Positions 1-16,565 of a stretch of 16,565 nucleotides of DNA are shown here, in pieces. The first letter of the stretch is position 1. Each line of letters opens with the position of its first letter. A program made the position numbers and the translations under genes. This stretch comes from Marsupella aquatica. Lineage: Eukaryota; Plantae; Marchantiophyta. Below the pieces are notes generated by a model. It was not told where the DNA came from, searched no databases, and saw only the letters and a list, made by a program, of their open reading frames with translations. The stretch spans positions 1 through 16,565 of the forward strand of contig CCZZQB010000057.1 of NCBI GenBank assembly GCA_973895155.1. Reading direction: 5' to 3'.

Positions 1-295
1 ATGAAACAAAGCATCATATAAGCAGATCCTACATAAAACATTCATAAGAATTAAACACAATCACAATCTTGCTAAAAAATGAAGATCATTTGAATTCCAA
101 TGGAATAGTTTACAATGTGATCAATGTAATTTAGACAAAACAGGAACTCATAATTGATGACTGTAGGATGAGATAACTGAAAGCACATGCATGATACTAT
201 GAATCTCCAAGAGGACATGATTCTTGTACTGTTTCTTGACATCTAAAATCTACATAACATGACTCACACTACAAACAAATAATGGCATGACATTG

Positions 296-3200
296 TTATG
301 GATCCTCTATGAACTTGCTTGGCCATAATACCAAAGAACCTGCAGCATCTCCAAGTGTCTTTTGAGGAGGATCATCATTTGTGTTTGGAATGGGAAGGAC
401 AGCTTTAGGTTTCACTAGTAATGTGACTAACACTACTGAATAACCTGGGGGAATCCTCTTGCCATGGAACGTTGTGGAACCAACCTGCACTCTGGCAAAT
501 CCTACTCGTGTTCCACTCTCATCAACAGCTAACAAGCCACTTTGTCCCTCAGCATTAGGTGCTTTCCCCACTTCCACCTTAGATCTTTCTGCCAGCACTG
601 TTCTTGGAGGTTTGTATGAAACCTTTGACGTGGCTCTGCTCCCACCAGCAGACTTGCTTCGTGTGCGCATGCTTCCTCTCTTCACAGTAGTGAAGCTAGG
701 CTCAGTAGGTTCCTCTGTTAGGACTGTCACAGTAGCAGGTTCATCACCTGGGAGTGTCATACCAACTAACTCTTTGGTTGGATTTATCTCAACAAGAGGC
801 ACACCTGTCATTGAGAATGATACATTCTGCAAATCATTTATCTCTGCAATGGAGTCAAGATCTACATAGCATGAATCTGGCTCAATGGTATCATTGTCAT
901 GCTTGCTGATATCCTCATTTGCCCCAACATTGATATCATCCACTCCCTTGCCAATGTCATCCTCATCCAAACATGGTTGACTGCCCTCTGTCAAACAAGT
1001 TGCTTGTACAGACTGCAACTTTGTTGCCTCTAAATTACAGCGAGTATTTGCCAGGTTCTCATACTTCTTCTCTGTAGCACCTGTCTTATTCTCTATGGAC
1101 ACAACAACCACAATATATGTTACTGAAAATAACACATTCAACAAACAATGTCAATTCAAACTATACATTTAATAATCATATCCCACACAGTTGTAAAGGC
1201 CTTACCTTCAAGCCTACATGTCGTTGGCATGCCAGAAGAGTGCATCGACTTTGCCACCTCAAGTGGTGATGGTGGAACTCCTGCAGAATTGGAATCAATT
1301 TTATCTCTCACCGACACAACAGCTTCCATTAATGTCTTGAAGTTCACATGGAACAAGTCAGTCAATGAATTCAAACGTTCATTGATCTCTGGAAGACATG
1401 TTTCGACAGCCTTCAAACGACCACTTATCTCTGTAAGTGAAGATCCACCTCCCTACATGACACAGGGGTATAGGTTCAATCACTCCATATGAAATGTTGG
1501 GCAATATATGCACAATCAATGTTATATACAGTGTACACCTGAAATTCAACGCAGGTCATTCAATTACCAATCAGAACTCATATAACTTACATGCTTGGAG
1601 GATTCAGATGCACCCTCTTGAGCCCGGGTGTTCACAATTTCAGCCCTCAACTCTTCTTTTGAAGGGCTTTGCCCCAATTGGGCTTTCTGCACATGCATGG
1701 CAAACACAAGTTATCGATCAATATTCAGGGAACGTACACTAAAAAACAAAGTTTACATGTAGGGACAGTACACTAAAAAATAGTACATAGTGTAGCATAA
1801 ATTACATAGCTAGGCCATTCATTCTTACCAAACGTTTAGCTGTCGGTGCAGTGCCGGTCCTTCCTGTCAGATTAGGGTTCTGAACACTCAACCTGGCCTC
1901 GGTCATCTGTGAACTCTTCTTTTTTGAAGCATCTGTTACAAAATAAGCTACTAACCTTGCCCACACTTTATCATCACAACTGGCTGGTGGAGGCATATCT
2001 GGCTTCTCCCCACCTTCCTTCCAAGCCTTATGCATTCTCCACCTCTCTTGCTTGATAATTTTACCTGCTGTACTCTCTAGGCAACCTATGTCCACGCCAT
2101 CATCACTGCCCACATAATTCCATTTGGCAGCAACATTTTCACATACAGTCTTCCAATCTTTTGGATGCTGTTTTTTAAAATTAATAACACTCACATCTAA
2201 CCAACGCAATACTTCAGCTTTCAAATCAGCATGCCATCGGTTCTTGCGAGGACACTCAGCATCCACCCATTGTCTCTCATTCAACTTTACGTTCCCTTTC
2301 TTTGTCACCTCCCCTCGTGCACTGCTCTCGGTAGTACTGGGCGTTGTATTGGCCACCCCTTCATTCACCCTACCTGGGGTTCTGAAGCCACCTGGGAAAA
2401 TACAATGCCATTCATGCTTGAGAACTACATATAGCAGAATGGATGACGGCAACATTCAATGCTTCACTTCAAGAAAAATTCTTCAAACATACATACCTGT
2501 AGCTCTGCCTGTAGATGCCTGTGCAGGGACTGCACTCTGAAATTGTTGCGACCCTGGACCACCTGTCCAGCCTAGTACAGGGGCCGGATGATGTCACTTT
2601 CTAGGTATGTGTGTGCAAACATATGTACTGAAAACTAAGTACAAACTGTAGGAAAACAACTGAACATTCACCGACATACCTGTCCCCCTTCCGTGCTGCA
2701 TCTGCATAGGGGCATTAGTGAATACTTGAGTCGATGGTTCGACTGTCCAACCTGCACACATACATTTTCTATCATTATACATGTGCAGAGTCCCCCCCAC
2801 GTGAATGGACTCCACATATAATGAGTTCTTCCATTGCTGACAAGATCAGACATTACCTGCTCCTCTTCCAGCGTTTGTAGGTACTGAATTTTGATATCCC
2901 TGCCAATTACCTTCACCACCTTCCCAACCTTGTTCATTCCACGACCCACCACCATCCTCCCAACCTGGTTCAACCCATGTCTGTCCTTGTGGACATTGGA
3001 ACTGATCATTACTAGCATTTGCCCAATCAGGTTGGGCAGAATCTGCATGCAATGGCAGGTGGACAGAATTTCATGTTGTCTGAATCCAATACATCCCAAA
3101 CAATGTCAAAAATTGATATGCAGTCTGAAATTCAGGAGTGCCATGCCTTCACAAAGAACTGGCATATAGATATATACTCACATCCCCACGGTTGAGGTGG

Positions 3201-4003
3201 ACGTCCATACCCACGAGATTGTGGGTTTGGACCTGCTCTGCCTCTACCACGGGCATAACCTAGAGCTTGCCCCCTGCCATAGTATTGGGCACCAGCCTGG
3301 GATCTACCACTACTACCACCTCGCCAACCTTGATCAGAGGTCAGCCCCCCCTGCTGGTATGGTGCATGCACAGGCTTCGAAGGCAAAACAGAACTGGCAG
3401 GACGCTGCATCACATCACCAACTACAATGTCAGGAACTAAGCAAGGTACATATGTGTAGTACTGAACATATGAAACCTCTAAACAAGAGTTTTTAACTCA
3501 AAACCTTGTTGGGAAAACTACTTACATGTTTCTTTTGGGGCTGCTCTGCAATGTATTCATCTTCATAACCCCCATCCTCATCCATTTCCTCTGGAAAATA
3601 CTCATCATCTGCATCTTCTTGTCTAGTGTCTGCACCCACCTGTGCAGCATCAATGTCATCTCCACATTCTGCCATTGTAGGTACGACCTTCTTGCTCAAC
3701 CTGTCACTCCGACGCACAGGCCCAGAGATAGTGCTGGTCACCCTTCTTGCGTACTCCTTTTGTTTCTTTGAAAATGCTGTGGCTCTGCGACATTCCAATA
3801 TGAGAATACAGTCACAATTTCAGTGCCACATTGAACTATTCATGTCACACAAACTCAGCGGAGGGGTGTAGTTGAGAATCGTTCCCTTACAATTCAGCCA
3901 CATCCTTTTCCAGATCCAGTTCTGCGATTTTGGCTTTCACGTATGCTCGTTGTTCCATAGCTTTCCTTTCATACTCACACATCTCTGTGTCACTCTGTTC
4001 CAT
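296..4003 (-). CDS. CACTA TnpA/TNP1 (Ptta/En/Spm-like) accessory protein, 10 exons: 4003-3891, 3784-3526, 3404-3182, 3042-2857, 2751-2680, 2571-2497, 2391-1829, 1686-1591, 1452-1206, 1092-296 (2631 nt, 876 aa)
   Basis: Nine GT-AG introns (105-139 bp) link ORF-track fragments with matching phases and no internal stop. The N-terminus has a CEYERKAMEQRAYVKAKIAELDL helix typical of CACTA second ORFs. Exon 7 is Ptta/En/Spm-like (WARLVAYF...KKKSSQMTEARLSV..NLTGRTG). The C-terminus is DUF8039-like. The exon 3 acceptor (3405) and the start codon are the least certain parts. Confidence 0.82.
299..535 (-). other. DUF8039-like C-terminal domain of the TnpA/TNP1-like protein
   Basis: Motif VGFARVQ..FHG..IPPGYSVVLV....KAVLPIPN..D....LGDAAGSLVLWP matches the recalled consensus of the CACTA TNP1 C-terminal domain (HG...V.V......LP.P......LGDA.G..V.WP). 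Confidence 0.8.
2497..3404 (-). other. Low-complexity G/Q/W-rich segment (exons 3-6 of the TnpA-like gene) with GW/WG and RG/GRG motifs
   Basis: The spliced translation contains SDQGWRGG, QPWGY, EPGWEDGGGSWNEQGWEGGEGNWQG, GAGWTV and GTGWTGG: six GW/WG dipeptides and ten Trp in about 190 aa. Confidence 0.8.
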
Positions 4004-4159
4004 CCTACTGGACCACAAAAACATGTCATCTATGGTCACCCCGTATAACACAATGCAACCACAATCACCAGGCATCCATCCATACATCTGTGTTGCTTCA
4101 GAATTACTTTATTACACATCCTTCCCCTCACTAATGTCTATGCAAACAATTCACATTAC

Positions 4160-7100
4160 TCATGGCACAGGCACACTGTTGGCATCTGCATCTCTGAATT
4201 CGCCTCCTTCAGCAAATGCATCTACCCTTGTCACAGGAATGAAGTCCCCGCTATCATGAACTACAGGCACTTGGTCTGAACGCCGACGATCAAAGGCACT
4301 ATGAGAGTGTAAATGAAACTCAAGGTTTGATCCTTCCATCCGGCGTTGCCTGGCCTGTTTATGACACACTACACGCCAACCTGGGGAGTCTTCCACATCC
4401 AGGAAGAAAGCTTGCTCCACCTGACTAGGAAACACAAATGGCTCAGACCATTCGGGCAATTTCCCTCTGAAATTGGCCAGCAAGAAACCGTCGTTGTCTC
4501 TCTTCATGGTAGCCCTGTTACCAAGCCAATCCTGCCGCACCCATGAACCTTTCATAAGAATCACAGGACTGGACACCGCCCCATAGTCCAGAGCCCATAT
4601 GTCAACTAATTCTCCCACATATCCCATCTCCATCCAGGCCCTGTCGTGATTGTGGCTCTGTTGCTCAAATACAGTGATGAGCCCGCAGTCATTCGTCACC
4701 CTGTAGGCACTGTCACCATCCTTCACTCGGAAGTGATTCCCATATGCTCTCATCCGTTTGTAAGTCTTCACTTTCAGGCTAGGGGCATTAGACAGTAGGT
4801 AAACATCTGCATCCATGTCTGGGTGGGTCTCGTGATGCTCTCTAATTGCCACTCTGATCCACTCCATGAAACCTGGAAAAGTTGTTCCTGCAGTGGGATG
4901 GGCCGCCTTCAATGACTCATACTCCCTGAACGAACAACCACACAGCATTAGCTTGGGTAAACATGAACAGGCTGAAGGAGAAAACCACACGAACACAACA
5001 TTTAAGCTCATGAACTGGATTATAGCACATGTATGCACTCACTGTATCCAGGGTTCCATCACCACAGTGTTGTGCAATACAAAGTCATGTGCCAAGTCTC
5101 TCATAGATATGGTCAGGTTCTTTGTGGTTGCAGCCCCTTCCAGTACTTCACCTACCACCCCTTCCTCCTCATCAGAATTCCACACCCTGGTCTTCACATG
5201 CTCATATTGTGCTATGTATTCGGTCAGAAATCCCAGAGTCTCATCCTTGATGTAACCTTTAGCCATGCTTGCTTCAGGTTTGTAATATGTTCTCACGTGA
5301 CCTTTGAGTAGCTTCATGTACCGTTCCAAAGGGTACAACCAACGAGCACTCACAGGCCCAAATTGGTGTAGCTCTTCCACAACATGGACAAGTAGGTGGG
5401 TCATGACATCAAAAAATGCGGGAGGAAAATAAATCTCCAGGTCACACAGCACCTGAGCGACATCTTCTGTCAGTTGTGGGAAGTGTGTTTCATCCCAAAC
5501 CTTCACACAAATACGACGAAACACATCACTGAGTCGCATGATCACAGTACGAACAGGCTTCTGCAACAGGCCCCTCAGGCATAAAGGCAACACCTGTTGC
5601 ATCAACATATGGTAGTCATGGCTTTTCATACTACCAAGCTTTCTAGTCATGATATGCTTCTTGAAAGCACTGCCATAGTTTGAAGGAACCTTCAAAGAAC
5701 TCAACCTCTGCACAAATAGTTCCCACTCTGTGTCTGTCAGAACATAGGGCGCTTGGTACTTCAAGAGCACATCAGCTCTGTGGGCATGTGGCCTCAACCA
5801 AAGATGGGGTTTCATTCCCCTCTGTTCAAGATCCAATCTCACTGAACCAGTGTCTTTCTCTCCACACAAGAATCTGAGTAGACTCTCACAAATATTCTTT
5901 TCAATGTGCATAACATCAATGTTATGTTTGCTTGGCTCAAACTCCTGCATCGTTGCAATGCAAAAGCGTCAGGAAATGCCTCAAGTTTAGTCTCTCTCTT
6001 CGAAATGAATGCACATGCTCTGAACCAAAACATGTATCCCAATTAGCATCAACTCCAAGAGGCTTACCCTCCAGTACTTGAGCTCCAAGTCCAATATGCT
6101 CAGTCTTTTTACACCATATCGCTTTATTGGATCACTCACTCCATCTTCCCTGCCCCCTCGTTTGATATAGTCATCCCTCAGTGCTCCCCACTGCCTGATC
6201 TCCTCTTTGGTCACTCGTGCCGGGGGTCCACGTTGCTCAATCTCATTGCCAAAGTGTGCAATCAGTGCCTGTCTTTCTCTGTAAGGGTGATCTGTCTTCA
6301 GAAAACGACGATGGCCCATGTATATCACTTTCTGCAGGGCTCTGGAGTACTCACTGGTGACATTGCGCCCACAGATAGTACAAGCACAATATCCTTTTGT
6401 TGTTTGGCCTGATATCATCCCATGGGCTGGGTAGTCAGCTATAGTCAGAATGACAATGGCTCTAAGGATGAATGGGTTTAACCTCCCAAGCCTCTGTAGG
6501 ACATCATATGTGAGAACTCCTTCCTCCCAAAGCTTTCTCAATTCCTCCACTAGGGGAGCCAGAAACACATCTATGTTGGCAGATACAGCACTGTCTGGCC
6601 CTGGTATCAGTAGGACCATCAGAACAAAAAATCGCTTTGTAGTCATCCAAGGAGGAAGGTTATAATTCAAAATAGTTACAGGCCAGCATGAAAATTTGTT
6701 GTTCTTGTCTCCAAATGGGTTTACCCCATCCAATGACAGCCCAAGTCTGACATTCCTCGGCTCAGCAGCAAATTCGGGATACATCTCATCTATGAGTTTC
6801 CATTGCCTTGAATCTGCAGCATGTCGTTGTAGCCCATCATCACTTTTCTTGTCAGTTGCCCAAGTCATCATCTCCGAGATGGCACGGCTTCTGAACATCC
6901 GCTGAAGTCTGGGAATGAGTGGAAAATGACGAAGTACCTTGGCGGGAACCATAGACTTTCCTGAGTTCCGATACCTGTGCTTCCCACACTTAGGGCATGT
7001 CAACGATTCTTTATACTCCTTTCTGAAAAGAACATGCCCATCAGGACAGGCATGGATCGAATCATAGTTCAATCCAAGATTAGATATGCATCTTTTTGCC

Positions 7101-7891
7101 TCGTACATGTTCTTGGGCAAAATATTACCATCTGGTAGCACAGTTGTTCGCAAGAATGCCAACAACTCAGAAACCAAAACGTTGGGGACATTGTGGTTGC
7201 CGCAAATGTTCAGGAACATGATGACAAATCCCAGTTTAGAACATTTGCTACCGGGGTACAAAGACTTCCTGCCTTCCTGTATTTGCAGGGGAGAGCCAAA
7301 CATCCCATCATGCCCAGGGGTTTCCTGCCCTATCTCAAACTCATCAAGAGGCTCTTCGACAGGGGGCACACTTGCATCTGCAGCCGTATCCTCTTCATTG
7401 TCCAGCCCATCATGAAATGCATCCAAGTCTTGGAAGATGTCTCTCACCATCTCTTCCACATGAATTCCTTCGTCACGTGGTGCTGCCTGAGCACCATCCC
7501 GTTGGAGAGCTGACAACCCACAGAGACCAGCTACAACATTTTCAAATGCACCAGGCAGAACCTCACTTGCCCGTCTTGCAGCATTGGCAGCATCAAATTC
7601 TAACCTCCACTCCTCGTCGGAAGAATCTTCCTCTGCAGGATCATTCCAAACTCGATGTCGTGGATCTCTTCCATGAACCGCGATATGCCGCCAAACCTCA
7701 TTCAGACCCCTGGTACGGGATCCTTGGCAGATTGCACAAGGACATCTCATCCTACTGGCTCCTGAAAGTCTGGTTCGTAACCTTTCACGCTGCCAAAGCT
7801 TATTATCATGGCGTGATATCCTTGTGGGATGATGCAAAGGCAGTGCCTGTGCCCTGGGCTGGGTCTGGGGAGGGTGGTGACCAGGGTGCAT
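4160..7891 (-). CDS. TNP2: CACTA TNP2/TnpD-type DDE transposase, 3 exons: 7891-6068, 5944-5043, 4925-4160 (3492 nt, 1163 aa)
   Basis: Domain order: N-terminal transposase-associated Zn motif (RMRCPCAIC...RHIAVHG), HACPDGHVLF..CPKC, Transposase_21 core, HNIDVMHIEKN, DUF4218, DUF4216. Intron 6067-5945 (AGG|gtaagc...tgcag|GAG) joins YWR|EFEPSKHNIDVMH in frame. Intron 5042-4926 (CA|gtgagt...ttcag|G) joins PWIQ|EYESL in frame. Putative catalytic D (6728-6730), D (6434-6436), DxxH (5906-5917) and E (5324-5326) are all present. The exact start codon is uncertain. Confidence 0.93.
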
Positions 7892-8020
7892 TGTAACAGG
7901 CTGGGAGCTCTGCAGTCATGGACAGCAGTGAACAAGGATGCCTAATGGTGGTATTTGTGTTCCATATATCCCTGACTGTATCTGCCAAAAGAGTTAACAT
8001 AACGTGTACTAAATTCTCAC

Positions 8021-8029
8021 AAACCCTAA
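8021..8029 (+). promoter_or_regulatory. Telo-box-like motif AAACCCTAA about 130 bp upstream of the transposase start
   Basis: Exact AAACCCTAA match in the 5' region of TNP2. Related ACCCTAAA motifs occur near 11112 and 15604. A short motif like this could occur by chance. Confidence 0.25.
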
Positions 8030-8324
8030 ACCACCCCAAAAGAAAAAAACAGGTTCGCAAGTAGTGTACCTATTGTCAAGTGAATGACACAAAATTTCTA
8101 AATGTTGGAGGGTGTCACCACCTCCTCCGCTGTCCTCAAATGTACCGCCTCTGCATGTACGTTTACAGTGACACCCCCAGGCAGCAGGAAACAACAATCC
8201 GCCAACAATAAAATAAGCCCAACTGCCACCAACCATAACAAGGTACATTAGTTCAAAGATCACATTTATTTCAATGATCTGATTTATACAAAAAAACTTG
8301 TGTCCAAACTGATGCTACTACTCC

Positions 8325-9197
8325 TCACTCTGATTCAGAATCGCTAATGACCCATTCCTCACTTGTTGTCTCATAGTCCTCTCTGTAAGGATCCTGACCC
8401 TTCCGTGGCCAGGCCTCAAAAAGATCATAGTCCATTGGGTTTTGACGCTTCCCAGCTGCTACTGATTCCACAAGCCAAGCATATGAAACCACAAACACAT
8501 TATGGGACATGACATAAAAGCGAATGTCTCCCTTCCCAAACTTGCGGCAGGCTTTGGGATATGACTTAGTAATGACATGAGTGGTGTCCTCTGTTATATT
8601 CTCCTCCACTGTCCCACCTAGGTCAAGCACTGTGGACTTGTACACTTTGCACTTAACCTCTCCAATTCCCGCCTCCACAAATACCATGCTCAGCCCTTTC
8701 AGAATGGGGGTTGGTTGCTTCGTCTCCTCAGCCAACATACTCTTCAGCCTTGTAGAGCTCTGTCCTTTGTTGAGTACAGGTCCATATTGGAGATCAGCAA
8801 GCCGTGCCTTTGCTTCCCAGACTTCTTGTTCAGCCCAAGCTGATGCAGTAGCTTCTTCATCCTCCCACAACTCATATTGCTCAGTATCCTGTACAATCTT
8901 ATGTGCTATGGAATCTGTGATCCAAGAGGCCTCAACTACTTTTAGGCCTTGCTTAGTAATTGCAGAATTCATGTAGGACCATGACCACTTCTTTATCACT
9001 GATAGCCATGTCCCTGCAACAACATGTGTAGTCTCTGGAGTGATGTCCTGAACTACAGTGCCATGGAGCTCAGAGAATCGTTTCTGTACAGTTGGCCAAT
9101 GCACTTTGGTCAACCCATGCTGGCCATGGACCAAAATCGCTCTGACCCCTGTAAACACTGCTGGGTGGTCACACTTTCTACGTTTACCAGGCTCCAT
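8325..9197 (-). CDS. Tandem BRCT-domain protein (290 aa from ATG at 9197); BRCTs resemble the plant DNA polymerase lambda N-terminal BRCT; no polymerase domain
   Basis: Two repeats carry BRCT hallmarks (F/L.G, GG/HG.V, TTHVV/I, W+..S, terminal Y.L): VFTGVRAIL...LHGTVVQDITPETTHVV...SWITDSIAHK...YEL and ILKGLSMVFVEAGI...LGGTVEENITEDTTHVI...KFGK...YAWLVESVAAGKRQNPMDYDL. A basic GKRRK NLS-like motif precedes them. The ORF-track start at 9203 is a GTG. Confidence 0.88.
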   Translation of the reverse strand: MEPGKRRKCDHPAVFTGVRAILVHGQHGLTKVHWPTVQKRFSELHGTVVQDITPETTHVVAGTWLSVIKKWSWSYMNSAITKQGLKVVEASWITDSIAHKIVQDTEQYELWEDEEATASAWAEQEVWEAKARLADLQYGPVLNKGQSSTRLKSMLAEETKQPTPILKGLSMVFVEAGIGEVKCKVYKSTVLDLGGTVEENITEDTTHVITKSYPKACRKFGKGDIRFYVMSHNVFVVSYAWLVESVAAGKRQNPMDYDLFEAWPRKGQDPYREDYETTSEEWVISDSESE

Positions 9198-9790
9198 GTA
9201 CACACACCCTACGTGATGACAGTGAATTTTGGAAGAATGGGTTCACCTGACAATACAAGGACAACAAAATTCCTGCTTTTTGAGTTGATCTGGCCCACTG
9301 GTGCTCAGGTCCGATTTTGATAGGTACAAGGGATATGTCACACAATACGTACTAGGCACCTGCACGGATGCAGGACATTGTTTGAATATATACTACAAAA
9401 TCCATATCCGTGGTGAAATGAAGTGCAACCAACTTGTCATGGCACATACATATTTTGTTGTAAAGGAGGATACATTCAATGACAAACTTATAGGGCAATT
9501 TGATTAATTGCATGCCTGATAATTTATACGCTTACAACTTAGAAGTCCTGTTTTAATTTAGCAGTGTGATGAAAGTGTTTATGAAAATGACCACTCAGCC
9601 TAAATACTTCCAAGAAGGCTTGTAAGGATAAGTTTGTATAGGCATGTACCCAGCCACTGACGCCAGAGCACAAGATAAGTGCTGCCTATATAAACTCGCC
9701 TACCCAACTCCTTTTCAAAATTGGAATCTCTGCAATCTCAAAAAATAGTACATCCACATCAGGTGCACTGTGCATGTACAATGTTCAGCT

Positions 9791-10471
9791 TCACAGCCAA
9801 GATATGTGATCTCTCACAGGAGTGCGCGAGGTAGGATCAATGGCATGGCGATGACAATAAAATATCCATCGATCAACACCATGTGCAGAGTGATCATAGA
9901 TTTCTCTGTCACAAGCATAACCCTCTGCTTGATGATCTTTCAGGCAATGATAGTGCCACATAGTGGGACACCTAGCACAGTGGACTATGTCAGTCCAGTA
10001 GTCATCATCATGCTCACCACATGCCTTGCACCTATGAAGTGGGCAAGCTGTGGCATGAGCAGGCAAACACTCAAAACAGAAAAATCTCACACAAAAACGG
10101 TCTGGACATTTCCTAACATTTGCTGCAGCATCAACAGAGCCCTCATAGGACCCCAACTTCCCACACTGTGCACACTTAGCCTGCTTCTCCAAACAATCAG
10201 TGCACATCCAGTCTCCCTGGTGTGTTGACGGGAGGCCCACCCCTGGACAGTTGTTTTCTGCAGCAAGGTCAGACTCCGGGTTGAGGTGGAAATGCCTCAT
10301 GCAAGGGCCCTCACAAATGACCAGGCCCCCACCATCGTCACAAATGGCACAACAATGAGCTGCCTTCTGGAAAATCTGACTTGCAGAGAAGTTAGTAGCA
10401 TCTGCCCCAAGTACACCTGTGTTTCTCACCTCTGTCACACGCTTTTTGGCTTGAATTTTAGGCCGTGCCAT
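9791..10471 (-). CDS. Stand-alone EDM2-like triple PHD-finger protein (226 aa)
   Basis: CAICDDGGGLVICEGPCMRHFH...C...WMCTDC...CAQCGKLGS...C....C...C..C...CPLHRC..C...CARCP..WH.HCL...IFYCHRHAIDPTSRTPVRDHISW follows the recalled EDM2 PHD block (CAICDNGG...CEGSCLRSFH...CPLHKC...CRRCPKSYH..CL...LIYC.EHEID....TPVRDH). It lacks the EDM2 N-terminal and methyltransferase-like regions. An acceptor-like tgcgcag|G lies just before the ATG. Confidence 0.88.
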   Translation of the reverse strand: MARPKIQAKKRVTEVRNTGVLGADATNFSASQIFQKAAHCCAICDDGGGLVICEGPCMRHFHLNPESDLAAENNCPGVGLPSTHQGDWMCTDCLEKQAKCAQCGKLGSYEGSVDAAANVRKCPDRFCVRFFCFECLPAHATACPLHRCKACGEHDDDYWTDIVHCARCPTMWHYHCLKDHQAEGYACDREIYDHSAHGVDRWIFYCHRHAIDPTSRTPVRDHISWL

Positions 10472-10482
10472 GCCTGCGCATG

Positions 10483-10626
10483 AGATAGACTCTACAATTT
10501 AGCAGACTGCACAGAAAGTAATATATATTTAGCATTTAAGGTACAAAGGCATTTAGATAGACTCTACAATTTAGCAGACTGCACAGAAAGTAAAATATAT
10601 TTAGCATTTAAGGTACAAAGGCATTT
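10483..10626. repeat. Tandem duplication, 2 x 72 bp, one mismatch
   Basis: 10483-10554 and 10555-10626 (agatagactctacaatttagcagactgcacagaaagtaa[t/a]atatatttagcatttaaggtacaaaggcattt). Confidence 0.97.
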
Positions 10627-11241
10627 GCTACTGCAATGAATTGGAATGGCCACACAAGGATGCAGAGCACACATACTTTTGGTATGTTGAGCCCACACAC
10701 AAAACTGATCCCCTAATACAATTTCTCCACCAACACCTCAATTTTAATTGTGGCTATGATTCACCAAAGGAGATCTGCAACAACATTTCATGCATTTGAA
10801 TCACATACAATAGTCGTGACATGTAAAACAGGCATTCTTCGAAGAGGATTGGTATGAAGCAGTGTCATAAGGGTTGAAATTTATACATCCTAAATAGGTT
10901 ATGATAGTGGCTGAGACAAATAAGTGAGGCATAAATCATTTTGCATATTATCACATGGCCCATTAATTCATTCAACGTTGCAATGTTCACCAGGTTAAAG
11001 CAGTCATGAAAGCAGTCTTTCAATAGAGACTTTTATGCGAGTTTGCTAGCCTCTTAAATTAGGATATTTTGCTTAGTGCAGGCATAATAGGATATAAGTT
11101 ATATACTGTTGACCCTAAACCCTGGACCCAAAATTGCTCATACATCAAAATTTTAAGTAAATATCCTCTGTGTTGAAGTCAGAGTGTTAAGCTATAGGTC
11201 AATGGTATCTGGTCTGTGCATGCGGTGTGACAAGTGGTCCT

Positions 11242-11691
11242 CTAGAGCATGTGATCCAAACATGTGTAGACACCAAAGTCACCGGTGGTGGGGTCTGGGA
11301 GGGCAGGACAAGTGACATCACCAGGCACACTGCAGGATGGCGAGTGGTTCCAAATGATACATTGTGCTCTATGCAAAAATCGGCATCCAAGAGAACGGTC
11401 ATCCAATTCTGGGCCAGAAGCCCTACAGGCAGGACAGTCATATTGGCAACTGTGTACACACCCTTGGCACCTAATTTGTGGCGGGTCATGTACAAGAGAC
11501 ACAAATACCAAGGATGTCGGGAAGGGTACTGAAGCAAGTAGAGGCCGGCTGTAGTTGTTCCTGGAAACAACAGGGTACTCAAAGTACCATGCAGACTGGG
11601 CTGGAAGGATCCCAAGTCTGACATACTCAAGGCGCAACATCTCTGCCTTGCGTGCAAGTCGCACATGTTCAGCGTTGCGGGTCCTCACCAT
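11242..11691 (-). CDS. Hypothetical small Cys/His-rich protein (149 aa), possible zinc-binding domain
   Basis: ATG start with a basic MVRTR N-terminus and an in-frame upstream stop. The C-terminal half has 10 Cys and 4 His, including CxxC (CQGC), CxxC (CPAC), HxxxC and CxxH (CLDH). Same strand as the other genes. No family recognised. Confidence 0.45.
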   Translation of the reverse strand: MVRTRNAEHVRLARKAEMLRLEYVRLGILPAQSAWYFEYPVVSRNNYSRPLLASVPFPTSLVFVSLVHDPPQIRCQGCVHSCQYDCPACRASGPELDDRSLGCRFLHRAQCIIWNHSPSCSVPGDVTCPALPDPTTGDFGVYTCLDHML

Positions 11692-12686
11692 AAGTGTTGC
11701 TTTTGTTGTGATGTCCTCTGTTCACGTCCTTTGATGAGCAAGGTGAGCAGGAGGTCGACTTGCCTCGCCAACAGCAACCACCTAAACTAATCAGTTCCCA
11801 CTCAACTACAGGTCATAGTATACACATAGCATGAAACGTGCATAGTACATATTTGATTCTGAGTTTATGAGTTTCCTAAGACAAAGAGCTTGGTGATAAA
11901 CCCATATTCTCGATGGACATGTATATCAATCGTATTAAAATCCTGTTTTTTCATCCAGAAAGACCGAAAGTCTCACCTTGCAGGTTGCAGCAGAGAGAAA
12001 ATTCACTGGTTGTCGTGTTGTGCAAGTGAACCTCCACTGATGCCCCCGGTGTAGCCCCTCAGATGCAGGTGACACTTACCAACTCCCAAGTTGCCTGGTC
12101 TAACAGAAAATGCTTATATCTTCAGAACTTTATAGAGCAAGTACATGATCACATACTTCTGGATCTATTCATATTTGGAACTCTTGCCAACTACAACTCC
12201 CATTATGCACAAGCTCACATCAACAGAGAAAAATACAGAATGCATACTTACTATGGCTCTAAGCACCTTCACTACCTTGTTGAACCCAGTCCTGAAGTCT
12301 TTTCAGCGTGTTTGTTGTGCTGTCTCCTTTGGCACCCAACACCTTAGTCCTTGATGTAACAGAATGCGATTTTACAAGTTAGATGCTTTGGAACCTTCTA
12401 TGGTCTTAGCTGAATTGATGTCATCGTAAGTGGTGAAAGACAAGGAAGACGAAAGCTGGTTGAAGAGCTGTGGACAACACACTAGCATGAAGTGCTTCAA
12501 CCAATCCACTGCCAAACGGAACTCTTACACAGTCACATTCTTTCAGTAAACAGAAACTCAATCAAACTTCATAATCAAAGTACAGACTCTGAAGGACCAA
12601 AGGAGGATGTTGTGAGTTTCTCTGTTGTTTAATGTGTTACCCTTCTAGTTTCGAAGTTAGCAAATGCTGAATAATGTGTCTACCAG

Positions 12687-13026
12687 ATCTTCGAAAAGAA
12701 GCCCACCACAATTAAGAACTTTGGTATCTGGGTGAGGTATCAGAGTTGTACAGGTTATCCCAACATGTACAAGAAATATTGTGATACCACATTAAACAAC
12801 CACACAGCAGATGTATGATGAGATGGCTTCTTGTCATAGAGTTCGGTTCCCTTGCATCCAGATCATCAAGACTACGACAGTCCCTGTCTCTCTGTGCAAG
12901 CGAGAAAGTACCAAGCAGTTCCATGATTCAAAGATCAAGTTCCCCTTGACGTACCGCAAGATTCAACCTCCATCGCGAAAGCTAAAGACGACTTACAAGG
13001 CCACCAAGCCCAACACATTTGTTTGA
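12687..13026 (+). pseudogene. RPL18A: 60S ribosomal protein L18a (eL20) fragment, C-terminal about 113 codons, with a frameshift near 12798-12810
   Basis: Translates as [37 protein letters not shown] / [73 protein letters not shown], clearly plant eL20. There are 13 nt instead of 15 between the N and M codons, giving a frameshift. The N-terminal part is absent. The fragment starts at an acceptor-like taccag|ATC. Confidence 0.93.
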
Positions 13027-13484
13027 GTAGTGCGGGTGTAGGTTCCCAATTTTGAAACAATTTGGCTCATTTTATGTCCCGAGGGACTCCAGGAGTTTAT
13101 GTATTGAGTTTCTAGGTCAAGATGCTTAATATAAGGAAATTCAATTATCACCTCGTTCCCAACTTCTATTAATTGAATATACACAAGCTGGAAGCAAGAA
13201 GACAAGCCACAATCTAGCATCTTAGCCAAACACAATCGTCCCGACAAAGCAAAACTCAGCTGGACAGAAGTCACTCGGATCCACAAAAAATTGAAGATTC
13301 ACCTCCAAGCCGGAGGCCGATCACTTCAGTACAGCAGCTTCTGGACGGAACAAACTCTGCTCAGCCCCACAAAAACACAAATGTTAAGGCTCCAAGTCAG
13401 AGCTCACAAACAGAAACTCAGATAAATAACATTCAAAATCTGTCCAGGTTTGTGCAAAGTGTACATATTCATTCTTCTGGAATG

Positions 13485-13512
13485 AACACGCAATGCATAC
13501 ATCGCCTAGACA
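13485..13512 (+). repeat. 28-bp dispersed repeat, copy 1 (copy 2 at 15610-15637)
   Basis: aacacgcaatgcatacatc[g/a]cctagaca, 27/28 identical; the flanks are unrelated. Confidence 0.85.
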
Positions 13513-14196
13513 CAGTCATTATAAATCATTGGGCAATTGGGGACCACTAAGCAGGTGTGTTCCTATTTCGAGGCTACAAGAAAGGATAGAGTGACACCAA
13601 ACTGAAGAGTACACCAAAAGAAAAACAGCAAGAACCAAAGTCAATCATGTGTGGATATTTTGCACATGGGAAGTTCCCCTGAAGAAGCACCAGTTGCTAA
13701 CATTGTCACCCGAACCACACCCAGTTTATTACCTCAATGTCTTCAGCCTCAATATCCAATCCTCAGCCCCCTGGTGCTTCCGTGTTTGTTCTGAAAATTT
13801 CTGTGATGAAATAATTATTCAATACATTCAATAGCAAAGAGAACTCAATCACAAAAGAAAAATAGTTAGTGTGAATGCTAATTTCTCAACACTTAACTAA
13901 ATTCAAACCACCAATTCAAGTAGTAAGTTTCAAAAACTTGCCTTTACATGAAGAGAAACCAATTGGCCATGCATGTTACTAAAGCAATAAACAAATAATT
14001 AGGCTCAACCCCGGGCTCAACACACAGGCAAACTACTCGAAACATGCTGCTGAGAAGTAACATTTTTTGAATGTCAGACTATGTGTAAGTGCCATGATCG
14101 TGCTCCTACGTTTCACAAGGAGGGCTGGCCCGAAAGGGAGAAGCAACAATGTGGAGTCTATACACGTAGCACAAATCCCAGTTTAGAAGGGTGGAT

Positions 14197-14310
14197 GAAG
14201 TTCAGACAAGAGTTCAGAACTTGCCATTTGAGATTGCCAATCTGAACTTCACATTCAGACAGGACTTCATCCAGTTCAGGAGTTCAGATAGGAGTTCAGA
14301 CAATCTGAAG
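14197..14310. repeat. Cluster of short GTTCAGA/TCTGAAC motifs in direct and inverted orientation
   Basis: GTTCAGA at 14200, 14212, 14282 and 14294; variants at 14253 and 14274; inverted copies at 14241 and 14304. GAAGTTCAGA (14197-14206) and TCTGAACTTC (14241-14250) form a perfect 10-bp inverted pair. Confidence 0.75.
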
Positions 14311-14865
14311 AGGACTTTGGACTTGAATGAGGGACAGCGTGGCCATATAGTTATCCTTGTGGCCTTCAGCTGCGTGTCTCAGGCTGAATTTCACTTTCCA
14401 GTTTCGAGAGTTCTGAAGGTCTAGTTTTAGTAACTTCCTCCTGACTCGACTTGGGAGCATTCTCCCTATTTGCTAGCTTGTAGTTAGCTTTGACTCCTGT
14501 GAGCTTAGTTGACGACCCTCTTGAGATATTAACAATTAGAACAAACACAAGTTGTCAAGACAGATTCCACCGGAGCAAAAAGTCCAAAATCAGGTGAAAG
14601 AAAACCTAAGGAAAGTCCATAAGAACGAAAGTAGGAAGGCAGGTGCACGGGCCACCGAGAAAAGTAAAGGATGCATGTGATTAGTGGGGAGGGATCTTAG
14701 CAAAAATAGGGGAAAGCAAGGGAACTTGCTGCTAAAATCAGCTGAACGATTGCACGGTTCCTATAAATTTAGTGGACCTTAAGGCCGTCTGTTCAGCCCC
14801 CCACCCCATTGCCAGAGCACGGGGCACAAGGCATGTTCTGATACAGGGAGGAGCAAAACAGTCAT

Positions 14866-15087
14866 GTCAAGCAAGAAATGTGGAGAGACCAATCAGTAAG
14901 CAAAAATAGGGGAGAACATACATACATGATCAGCAGCAGCAGGAAACAAGAAAGATGATTTTGGGTGGCATCTTAGGGTCGGGGACACCACTGCAACACC
15001 GGGACTTAGGATATGAGTTGTTCTTAATCTGCTAGTAGCATCCGGCAGGCCGGCGACCCATGGCAAAAGGGCAGAGCAACAATCCGC
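14866..15087 (+). repeat. About 220-bp direct repeat, copy A
   Basis: Aligns by eye with 15693-15911 at roughly 85-90% identity (gtcaagcaagaa...gagagaccaatcagtaagcaaaaatagggga...caacaccgggacttaggatatga...aatccgc). Confidence 0.95.
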
Positions 15088-15609
15088 TAAAACTACCGAG
15101 TCTCACCTTTGCGCTACTGACTGTCACCTTTGTCCAAGGTAGCTAGTAATAGCAAGTTGAAGTCCCGCTCCAAGTTGTCGGCTTCCACTCCAAGCTCCCT
15201 AAAAGATTGTGGCCTCAGGTCCAAGTCGTTAGCTCGCACGCGCAACTCCCTAAACCTACACACAGCGGAAGCTTAGCTCACCAACAACTTGCAGAAACAA
15301 TGACCTCCCCTCTGAAACTGATAAAAACACCTGAATACAAATAGTGAAGCACGAGGACAGAACAGGGAGAAGCGTTTTGCAGTTTGGGACGACAATGCTA
15401 GGAGTGTATACACTTCGGGCAACAGGGAGGTCCAATAATAGTTTGAATCTGACGGATGAAGCTCTAGGCGAATGAGCTCCAGGAGATTGGGTGCATGATT
15501 GAGTAGGCAATTGTAACAGCAGGCACCTGGCGATTGAAGGAAGCAGCATTCGGCAATGGACCTAGGCAGCTCGCGAATTTTGCTCAGCAGCGATGTCACC
15601 TAGACCCTA

Positions 15610-15637
15610 AACACGCAATGCATACATCACCTAGACA
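15610..15637 (+). repeat. 28-bp dispersed repeat, copy 2
   Basis: Matches 13485-13512 with one mismatch. Confidence 0.85.
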
Positions 15638-15692
15638 ACTATACTTGCAGCCACGAGGTGAGTCCGCGATAGGGGATTGAAGGAAGCAGCAA

Positions 15693-15911
15693 GTCAAGCA
15701 AGAAGCGTGGAGAGACCAATCAGTAAGCAAAAATAGGGGAGAATAGACATACATCAGCAGCAGCAGGAAACAAGAAAGATGATACTCTGTTCCATCTTAG
15801 AGTCGGGGACACTACTGCAACACCGGGACTTAGGATATGACTTGTTTTTAAACTGGAGATAGCATCCAGCAGGCCGGCGACCCATGCCAAAAGGGCAGAG
15901 CAGCAATCCGC
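15693..15911 (+). repeat. About 220-bp direct repeat, copy B
   Basis: Matches 14866-15087; the copies start 827 bp apart. Confidence 0.95.
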
Positions 15912-16565
15912 CATGTAGCGATAGGCGAGAGCAGCGATTACGACGATGAAAGATGGTCAAAGCTGAAGCAAAACCCCTAAAGATGCAGCTTGGCCATACT
16001 CTCTTTCCTCACCTCATAGCGCTAGGCATTCAACCTCCCTCTTCAATGAACCTCACAACAGCTTGAAGGTCGATAGATTTTACCTCGTCTCCTGAGCAGA
16101 AACGTCTGCATTAGCTAAACAGAGCCCGGAACAGAGCTATCGCATTTAGCCTCCCGACTCCAAAATTGAACGCAACACAACCTCCAACTCCCAATGGCAG
16201 CTCAGTAGGTTGATCAGCTCGGTCAATGCAGGTCAGTCGACCTCAATAGCCACACTAGAAGCTCACCGCAAGTCACTCAAAGGTCAGACTAGAAGCTCCG
16301 CCGCCTTCACACCGTAGCAAAAAACAATGAGACCAATATCGAGCAAGGCGACCCTGTTTGAATATTTGGCGACCATCAGGCTCCACCCCTCCTTTCTCGC
16401 TACCGTTCCCCCATGTGATGGTTAAGCTTCTGAGGACACAATCAATCGCACAAATGTAGCTTAAAGCAGGACCTCACTAAGCAGACTATCGGTTAGGACC
16501 TTATAGACATAGAGATAGATAGGTCAATGCAACCTTACTTGGGCCGATGCAGCATGTCTCTTCAC

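Follow-up and report, generated by a model that had tools for sequence, protein, structure and literature searches.

To our knowledge, plant DNA transposons are usually described with a transposase and at most one DNA-binding partner, VANC being the well-studied exception. A stretch of 16,565 nucleotides from the liverwort Marsupella aquatica (contig CCZZQB010000057.1; this whole stretch is the window below) raises the question of whether a transposon of the CACTA (En/Spm) superfamily can hold on to two additional genes, encoding a triple-PHD protein and a twin-BRCT protein, as lasting parts of its own make-up. The window has a G+C content of ~45% and is plant-type eukaryotic DNA, with plant-type content in TNP2, Transposase_24 and EDM2-like sequences, and the analysis covered this one copy from its genome. 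The contigs compared with it come from Logan, JGI or ENA assemblies. Four genes share the minus strand:

9791-10471, minus strand: triple-PHD gene, 226 residues, intronless, of the NSD/EDM2 type, with a conserved C-terminus ..RDHISWL
8325-9197, minus strand: twin-BRCT gene, 290 residues, intronless, with two BRCT domains (Pfam BRCT, E 2e-13)
4160-7891, minus strand: TNP2 transposase
296 to ~4012, minus strand: TnpA-like multi-exon gene, downstream of TNP2

Judging from gene content and order, it is quite likely that positions 296-10471 are the coding body of an autonomous-type CACTA element, from an old and distinct TNP2 clade that carries the arrangement 5'-PHD-BRCT-TNP2-TnpA-3'. Both accessory open reading frames (ORFs) are intact and intronless, as the first-pass annotation of this DNA had described them; each is complete, running from its own start codon to its own stop codon.

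The arrangement recurs in distant relatives. L018, a 13.4-kb ENA contig found through a TNP2 homologue 48% identical to that of the window, carries on one strand and in this order a PHD_NSD ORF, a BRCT ORF, TNP2 (Transposase_21, DUF4218), a Transposase_24-like exon and a DUF8039 exon; identities to the window are 38% for PHD, 27% for BRCT, 48–53% for TNP2, and 36% and 49% for the two exons. In the JGI contig L019, an intact 269-residue BRCT ORF lies ~620 bp upstream of TNP2, and in three Logan contigs from a separate sequencing project (L021-L023) a 271-residue BRCT ORF precedes, by ~400 bp, a TNP2 sharing 44% identity with that of the window. PHD is followed by BRCT after ~350 bp in L003, and L001 opens with a PHD C-terminus (..PARDHISWLLS, then a stop codon) followed by a full BRCT ORF. 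In a tree of 40 TNP2 sequences, the four BRCT-positive elements fall within a single 12-sequence clade (Shimodaira–Hasegawa-like approximate likelihood ratio test, SH-aLRT, 98), where they are spread over the three deepest branches. L017, whose TNP2 belongs to another clade, has neither PHD nor BRCT in the ~5 kb upstream of its transposase. Pairwise identities of BRCT and TNP2 rank alike, with L018 and L019 forming the closest pair in both. The simplest reading of these patterns is one old acquisition of PHD and BRCT, followed by co-inheritance with the transposase.

Substitution rates point the same way as the first-pass annotation, which had taken the two genes to be maintained by the element instead of broken captures and had proposed the ratio of non-synonymous to synonymous substitutions (dN/dS) among related species as a check. 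The values, 0.28–0.45, are those of purifying selection and are not near 1. For PHD, dN/dS is 0.28–0.31 between the window and L002 (82% amino-acid identity, dS ~0.33); over the coding sequence alone these two agree at 87% of positions, against 82% over all 954 alignment columns, so that, by our own arithmetic, the non-coding flanks are near 70% identical. For BRCT, dN/dS is 0.45 between the window and L001 and ~0.31 between L018 and L019, a pair with dS near saturation, whose TNP2 exons give 0.15–0.22. By these ratios PHD and BRCT are functional genes under weaker constraint than the transposase. Because collinearity persists at 27–53% identity, the bearers fall in a single TNP2 clade, dN/dS is 0.28–0.45 and the zinc ligands of PHD are invariant, we regard PHD and BRCT as old, maintained genes of the transposon lineage.

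The same data bear on passive capture of the Pack-CACTA type, in which PHD and BRCT would be host pieces without a role for the element. In its favour, an EDM2/NSD-type host protein is clearly the source of the PHD module, and CACTA elements are known to take up host fragments, as this explanation supposes. Fragments captured in this way are, however, usually truncated and short-lived, whereas full-length ORFs are found in six PHD and at least seven BRCT homologues, down to 27–38% identity, and both genes combine the low dN/dS with retention across the whole TNP2 clade. Passive capture is thereby largely refuted, and we hold it to be extremely unlikely.

What, then, do the two proteins look like? 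The PHD ORF matches the Pfam families PHD-1st_NSD, PHD_NSD and PHDvar_NSD in that order, each below cut-off, and the profile of its family finds the PHD region of NSD2 and NSD3 in the PDB (1e-10 to 1e-8). The window ORF has three consecutive PHD fingers with a complete Cys/His ligand set, the arrangement of the NSD type. Its five homologues are 217–245 residues long and 37–82% identical, and across the six aligned sequences the Cys/His zinc ligands and the C-terminal DHISW are invariant. The L018 PHD ORF (2372-3043) reads CAIYDEGG, where the others read CAICD.GG; a predicted zinc ligand is replaced by tyrosine in an intact ORF. Features of full-length EDM2, namely an RFD-like N-terminus and a methyltransferase-like C-terminus, are absent from the window ORF, which comprises the PHD module alone. 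Scanning JGI metagenomes with the PHD profile returned only distant relatives, 26–46% identical in the best segment, several of them in long or EDM2-like ORFs; none adjoins BRCT or TNP2 on the JGI contigs scanned. One of these metagenome proteins, L006, has 1,295 residues and combines DNMT1-RFD with NSD-type PHD fingers, which we take to be the architecture of EDM2.

The PHD repeat of EDM2 reportedly binds histones in a modification-dependent manner, and EDM2 alters the silencing state of transposons (PMC3632883). Given these reports, the profile match to NSD2 and NSD3 and the EDM2-like relatives, labelling the PHD protein a chromatin reader is reasonable. The 226-residue product is most likely, by its homology, a free-standing EDM2/NSD-type triple-PHD module that would dock on histone H3 tails. 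Its profile makes the module EDM2/NSD-like; a preference for histone H3 methylated at lysine 9 (H3K9me) is not readable from the sequence.

The BRCT protein belongs to a small family, since exhaustively searching 1.84 billion representatives with its profile gave only 18 proteins at E <=1e-10. Its homologues are all stand-alone, full-length proteins of 264–313 residues, the closest being on contig P0001. An AlphaFold2 (AF2) model with a mean predicted local distance difference test score (pLDDT) of 69 places BRCT1 at residues ~13-110, a helical linker at ~114-137, a disordered segment at 137-162 and BRCT2 at ~165-262; it shows two β-α-β BRCT units joined by a linker of ~55 residues with a long helix. 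L020 additionally carries, at 2-106, a BRCT-domain fragment that ends in a stop codon directly upstream of a full 313-residue BRCT gene, a local partial duplication.

The first-pass annotation had placed the protein with adaptors of non-homologous end joining (NHEJ), an assignment that the sequence comparisons do not bear out. The first long cellular-type profile matches are multi-BRCT proteins with PTCB-BRCT, RTT107_BRCT_5 and TopBP1 domains, and the five best of them, when checked, were TopBP1/Rtt107/PTIP-like. Against PDB sequences, Rtt107, BRCA1 and Rad4/TopBP1 match best (3e-7 to 6e-5, with Rtt107 and BRCA1 at 3e-7 to 1e-6), whereas Lig4 is weak (0.002–0.04). In a Foldseek search with the model, the Lig4 tandem BRCT comes first at 5e-12, over ~280 columns including the linker, followed by Rad4/TopBP1 (7e-11) and BRCA1 (7e-10), a lead of only one to two orders. 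The protein has the long helix-containing linker of the Lig4 type and lacks a specific sequence kinship to Lig4; its long-linker, Lig4-like topology, as modelled, remains a resemblance and not a family assignment.

In BRCA1-class proteins the phosphate pocket consists of a Ser/Thr-Gly after strand 1 and a Lys in helix 2 (S1655, G1656 and K1702 of BRCA1). Both BRCT folds are present here, but the Ser/Thr-Gly...Lys pocket is not conserved across the family alignments: the residue preceding the conserved Gly is H, P, S, D or D in BRCT1 and A, K, E or K in BRCT2 (four sequences). As the classical phosphoserine pocket is not conserved, the 290-residue protein is most likely a protein–protein adaptor, with two folds carried on a long helical linker.

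Downstream of the accessory genes, the window has the standard equipment of a CACTA element. TNP2 (Pfam Transposase_21, E 2.1e-70; DUF4218, 4.7e-28; weak DUF4216, 1.2e-4; weak Transpos_assoc) is a TNP2-type DDE transposase with Transposase_21 and DUF4218/DUF4216, as expected of the superfamily, and the TnpA-like gene supplies the second gene expected of a CACTA element. Their parts, all on the minus strand, are as follows:

6068-7891, minus strand: TNP2 exon 1, with a Transpos_assoc-like zinc motif and the Transposase_21 core that gives the E-value above
5945-6067, minus strand: predicted TNP2 intron 1, 123 nt, GTAAGC...TGCAG, with three in-frame stop codons
5043-5944, minus strand: TNP2 exon 2, DUF4218, 53–64% identical to L018, L019 and L004
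~4926-5042, minus strand: predicted TNP2 intron 2, 117 nt, GTGAGT...TTCAG, with an in-frame stop at 5039-5041
4160-4925, minus strand: TNP2 exon 3, the DUF4216-like C-terminal part, with its acceptor directly after TTCAG (first exon base G) and its stop codon at 4160-4162
3914-4012 and 3616-3726, minus strand: two short conserved coding blocks, matching L004 3830-3928 and 4100-4210 by tblastx
2849-3070, minus strand: stretch rich in glycine-tryptophan pairs (GW/WG), ..PGWEDGGGSWNEQGWEGGEGNWQG.., with clustered Gly-flanked Trp, read from open frames
1802-2455, minus strand: exon of the TnpA-like gene that matches Transposase_24 (Ptta/En/Spm) weakly, at a Pfam E of 1.5e-4, which is below cut-off
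296-1144, minus strand: last TnpA-like exon, whose C-terminal ~76 residues are homologous to a DUF8039 exon

The three TNP2 pieces share one frame, in-frame stops are confined to the two predicted GT-AG introns, both of a length divisible by three, and homology resumes on either side; on these grounds TNP2 looks intact, at ~1,163 codons. Exon 3 is 47% identical to both L018 and L019. Among the 937 TNP2 homologues found, the best are 53–70% identical and the named angiosperm ones 35–41%. For PHD, BRCT and TNP2 alike, every close relative stems from a Logan, JGI or ENA assembly without annotation, and one run series (SRR18067265, 351, 352, 573 and 574) supplies several of them; given the low angiosperm identities, the host probably belongs to a group of plants with little annotation.

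In the TnpA-like gene, residues 204-279 of ORF 296-1144 are 49% identical to L018 12345-12572 (tblastn, E 1e-15), and that L018 gene carries PF26133 (DUF8039); the window ORF itself has no Pfam match. Exons homologous to 1802-2455 occur at the same position, with the same weak Transposase_24 match, in L018 (36% identity, E 2e-4) and L004 (46–54%, E 6e-5). The short conserved blocks at 3914-4012, 3616-3726, 1642-1692 and 1258-1443 are collinear with L004, and the first two are probably 5' exons of the TnpA-like gene, as far as their conservation indicates. In L017, a DUF8039-like fragment (1402-1578, minus strand) lies upstream of the CACTA element and in the opposite orientation, and Ty3-type capsid and reverse transcriptase/RNaseH/integrase pieces lie downstream (14491-18743), in a transposon-rich neighbourhood.

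An Argonaute (AGO) hook had been ascribed to TnpA on the strength of its GW/WG pairs. The cluster is present at 2849-3070, but a dense cluster of this kind is absent from the corresponding parts of L004, L018, L019 and L017, and a tblastx comparison of window positions 2600-3500 with L004 gave no match. The GW/WG interval may be intronic. Adjoining it at 3135-3497, on the minus strand, is an RGG/GRG-rich, low-complexity open frame (..YYGRGQALGYARGRGRAGPNPQSRGYGRPPQPWG..), which is not conserved in L004.

The intergenic regions were as compact as first described, at under 0.8 kb: 770 bp between the Cys-rich ORF (discussed below) and PHD, 587 bp between PHD and BRCT, and 433 bp between BRCT and TNP2. 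Their features are:

10483-10626: tandem duplication of 2 x 72 bp, with 98–99% identity between the units; it starts 12 bp before the PHD start codon
9204-9790, minus strand: PHD-BRCT spacer, of which ~230 bp directly 3' of the PHD stop can be aligned to L002
7892-8324, minus strand: BRCT-TNP2 spacer, with an AATAAA, a conserved block and a GTAGTG hexamer inside

Each 72-bp unit contains, on the minus strand, TTTCTGTGCAG, which resembles a splice acceptor, and a polypyrimidine-CAG motif precedes each of the three upstream ORFs. The AATAAA is at 8265-8270, 55 bp past the BRCT stop. Taken as sequence motifs, the polypyrimidine-CAG stretches and this AATAAA are compatible with alternative splicing from one 5' leader in the style of En/Spm. 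The conserved spacer block, 8164-8238, matches L001 1608-1682 (60% over 25 codons). In L001 this conserved spacer block stands just before a weak F-box-like ORF (1866-2246, 126 residues, E 0.003, below cut-off). Apart from the 72-bp duplication, a tandem-repeat scan of the window returned only a weak 18-bp repeat, within the spacer that separates BRCT from TNP2. Rfam and tRNA scans of the window gave no match, and a scan for bacterial promoters and terminators, irrelevant to a eukaryote, stayed at background level. Beyond the genes, a repeat of ~225 bp occurs in two copies (14863-15087 and 15690-15911), 84–89% identical and 824–827 bp apart, and its shorter motif AGCAAAAATAGGGGA is also present at 14699; the repeat could be subterminal element sequence or some other repeat.

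The ends of the element are where a mobile CACTA transposon should be most recognisable. One candidate was found:

267-274, plus strand: octamer CACTACAA, a candidate for the 3' terminus, located 29 bp past the final stop codon of the TnpA-like gene

The octamer occurs once in the window, where by our own arithmetic ~0.5 occurrences are expected by chance. No partner terminal inverted repeat (TIR) matching it at 11 of 16 positions or better is present in 10472-16565. A gapped match to the CACTACAA end, at 13017-13032, reaches a score that shuffled sequence reaches as well, and the trinucleotides flanking this sole candidate pair (267/13032) differ, TCA against CGG, a comparison of little weight for ends that are only candidates. 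No 9–12-mers are enriched near either candidate end. The true termini may lie outside the window.

A terminus between the genes would separate the accessory genes from the transposase, and the first-pass annotation had noted that no TIR lies there. A GTAGTG hexamer does occur between BRCT and TNP2, at 8061-8066, but its agreement with CACTACAA ends after the six bases CACTAC. Because BRCT and TNP2 are also neighbours in three other lineages (L018, L019 and L021-L023), an element terminus at 8061-8066 is very unlikely.

Several observations weigh against a mobile element with two conserved and functionally assignable accessory genes. With respect to mobility, neither the window nor L018 yielded a TIR pair, a target-site duplication (TSD) or subterminal repeats. 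With respect to gene content, PHD is unseen upstream of BRCT in L019 (875 bp) and L021 (624 bp), where it may have been lost or may be located further upstream; no BRCT gene was called, by gene calls only, in the 931 bp upstream of TNP2 on the P0010 contig, which falls inside the clade; and in L001 the ~970 bp after BRCT hold the F-box-like ORF instead of TNP2. Some clade members may thus have lost one or both accessory genes. With respect to function, the AF2 model of the PHD protein was unusable (pLDDT 45) and was left out of the fold search, and the Foldseek matches of the BRCT model fail to separate the Lig4, TopBP1 and BRCA1 types.

The missing ends raise the alternative of a domesticated cluster, in which PHD-BRCT-TNP2-TnpA would be an immobile, transposon-derived, single-copy host locus retained by a group of plants. 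Such a locus would have no need of the TIRs, TSD and subterminal repeats that were not found in the window, within any sample each homologue appeared on one contig, and purifying selection acts on all ORFs, as it would on a host gene. Domestication, however, generally costs a transposase its partner gene and the tight arrangement of the element, whereas here the four genes keep the En/Spm order across four deeply diverged lineages. In addition, several TNP2 clusters of the clade comprise 6–10 sequences that are at least 90% identical (P0012, P0014), a BRCT fragment is duplicated in L020 and a different gene follows BRCT in L001; all this looks like rearranged copies of an element and unlike a fixed locus. 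We therefore consider domestication improbable, and continue to favour the coding body of a CACTA element.

The first-pass annotation had drawn the element's equipment more widely, with a fifth co-oriented gene at its upstream end. Co-orientation on the minus strand holds for PHD, BRCT, TNP2 and the TnpA-like gene, but the candidate fifth gene, a Cys-rich ORF at 11242-11691 on the minus strand, was rejected as a gene: it has no Pfam match and no homologue by tblastn or tblastx in L018 or L017. No coding conservation was found upstream of PHD. The interval 11191-11787 is poor in stop codons, with ORFs of 82–161 codons in five frames on both strands, none with a Pfam match or a homologue. A broken RPL18a fragment, which had been reported as a captured host piece, was not located among the ORFs at 1–4.3 kb or 10.5–16.5 kb.

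These results leave little room for a five-part kit (Cys-rich zinc-finger ORF, H3K9me reader, NHEJ-type BRCT, TNP2 and AGO-hook TnpA) that would block RNA silencing and steer end joining. Parts of it are sound, as PHD and BRCT are real and conserved, a GW/WG cluster exists and the Lig4 tandem BRCT tops the Foldseek matches. Against it stand the Cys-rich ORF without domain or homologue, the absence of the GW cluster from L004 and L018, and a BRCT protein that matches Lig4 weakly in sequence and has TopBP1/Rtt107/PTIP-like proteins as its nearest cellular matches. We judge the full kit highly unlikely.

How might the two proteins that remain serve the element? We tentatively prefer a mechanism at the chromatin interface, with PHD as reader and BRCT as bridge. 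By docking on H3 tails, the PHD protein would read the chromatin state at or around the element; aided by the BRCT adaptor, it would connect this chromatin to the machinery of TnpA and TNP2 or to factors of the host. One outcome could be that a long, alternatively processed element transcript is kept expressed despite heterochromatin, by anti-silencing or read-through like that of EDM2, which supports transcripts crossing heterochromatic introns. Another could be a biased choice of target sites, as with chromodomain-bearing retrotransposons. In its fuller form, a two-protein interface of an ancient CACTA lineage in which the EDM2-type reader senses host-imposed heterochromatin and a non-canonical twin-BRCT adaptor couples that signal to host RNA-processing or DNA-damage scaffolds, or to TnpA/TNP2, so that the element remains expressed, or selects targets or repair outcomes, in the face of silencing, the proposal is possible, if doubtful. 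As a second choice, the BRCT protein could instead bring the host's scaffolds for break repair to the breaks left by excision or made at integration, which we regard as unlikely.

Comparison with known systems shows what is shared and what is added. Like maize En/Spm and other autonomous CACTA elements of plants, the window combines a TNP2 transposase with a downstream, co-oriented TnpA-like gene of several exons (Transposase_24-like, DUF8039); in contrast to maize En/Spm, it has conserved triple-PHD and twin-BRCT genes upstream of TNP2, and its TIRs were not identified here. VANDAL21/Hiun Mutator-like elements (MULEs) encode VANC, which binds DNA sequence-specifically, causes methylation loss and acts in anti-silencing. 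The VANDAL/VANC system offers a functional analogy, one that the first-pass annotation had already drawn, as a plant DNA transposon that likewise keeps an extra, non-transposase gene for its own use, but the proteins are unrelated, and the modules of the window, known here from their sequence, are of the histone-reader and BRCT types. With EDM2 and NSD1-3 the PHD protein shares three consecutive NSD-type PHD modules; unlike EDM2, the protein of the transposon consists of these modules only (217–245 residues), with a family-specific C-terminus ..DHISW. With TopBP1/Rad4, Rtt107, PTIP, BRCA1 and Lig4 the BRCT protein shares two BRCT folds; unlike BRCA1, the window-type protein stands alone at 264–313 residues, and its ~55-residue linker with a long helix takes the place of a short one.

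Other mobile elements also keep host-derived modules over the long term, among them the RPA-like genes of Helitrons, the ULP1 protease of KI-MULE and the integrase chromodomain of chromoviruses. These differ from the present case in superfamily and in module, and here the modules are two separate genes, with no fusion to a transposase or integrase. In the library covered, our literature search found no publication linking CACTA/EnSpm elements with PHD or BRCT genes. What is new here is a standard CACTA architecture combined with a conserved two-gene accessory module.

The finding means that a CACTA clade has kept two extra genes over a very long time, in which their proteins have drifted apart to 27–38% identity. 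For annotation, PHD-BRCT-TNP2 synteny is a practical marker of this lineage, now represented mainly in unannotated environmental and raw-read assemblies. The PHD gene, if it is what it appears to be, would offer a compact, natural, stand-alone EDM2 PHD module for experiments. Should the two proteins act on the chromatin or the breaks of the element, they would constitute a second, mechanistically different counter-measure or targeting device of a plant transposon; and if the chromatin interface in particular is correct, VANDAL's DNA-binding VANC system would have a counterpart that works through histones.

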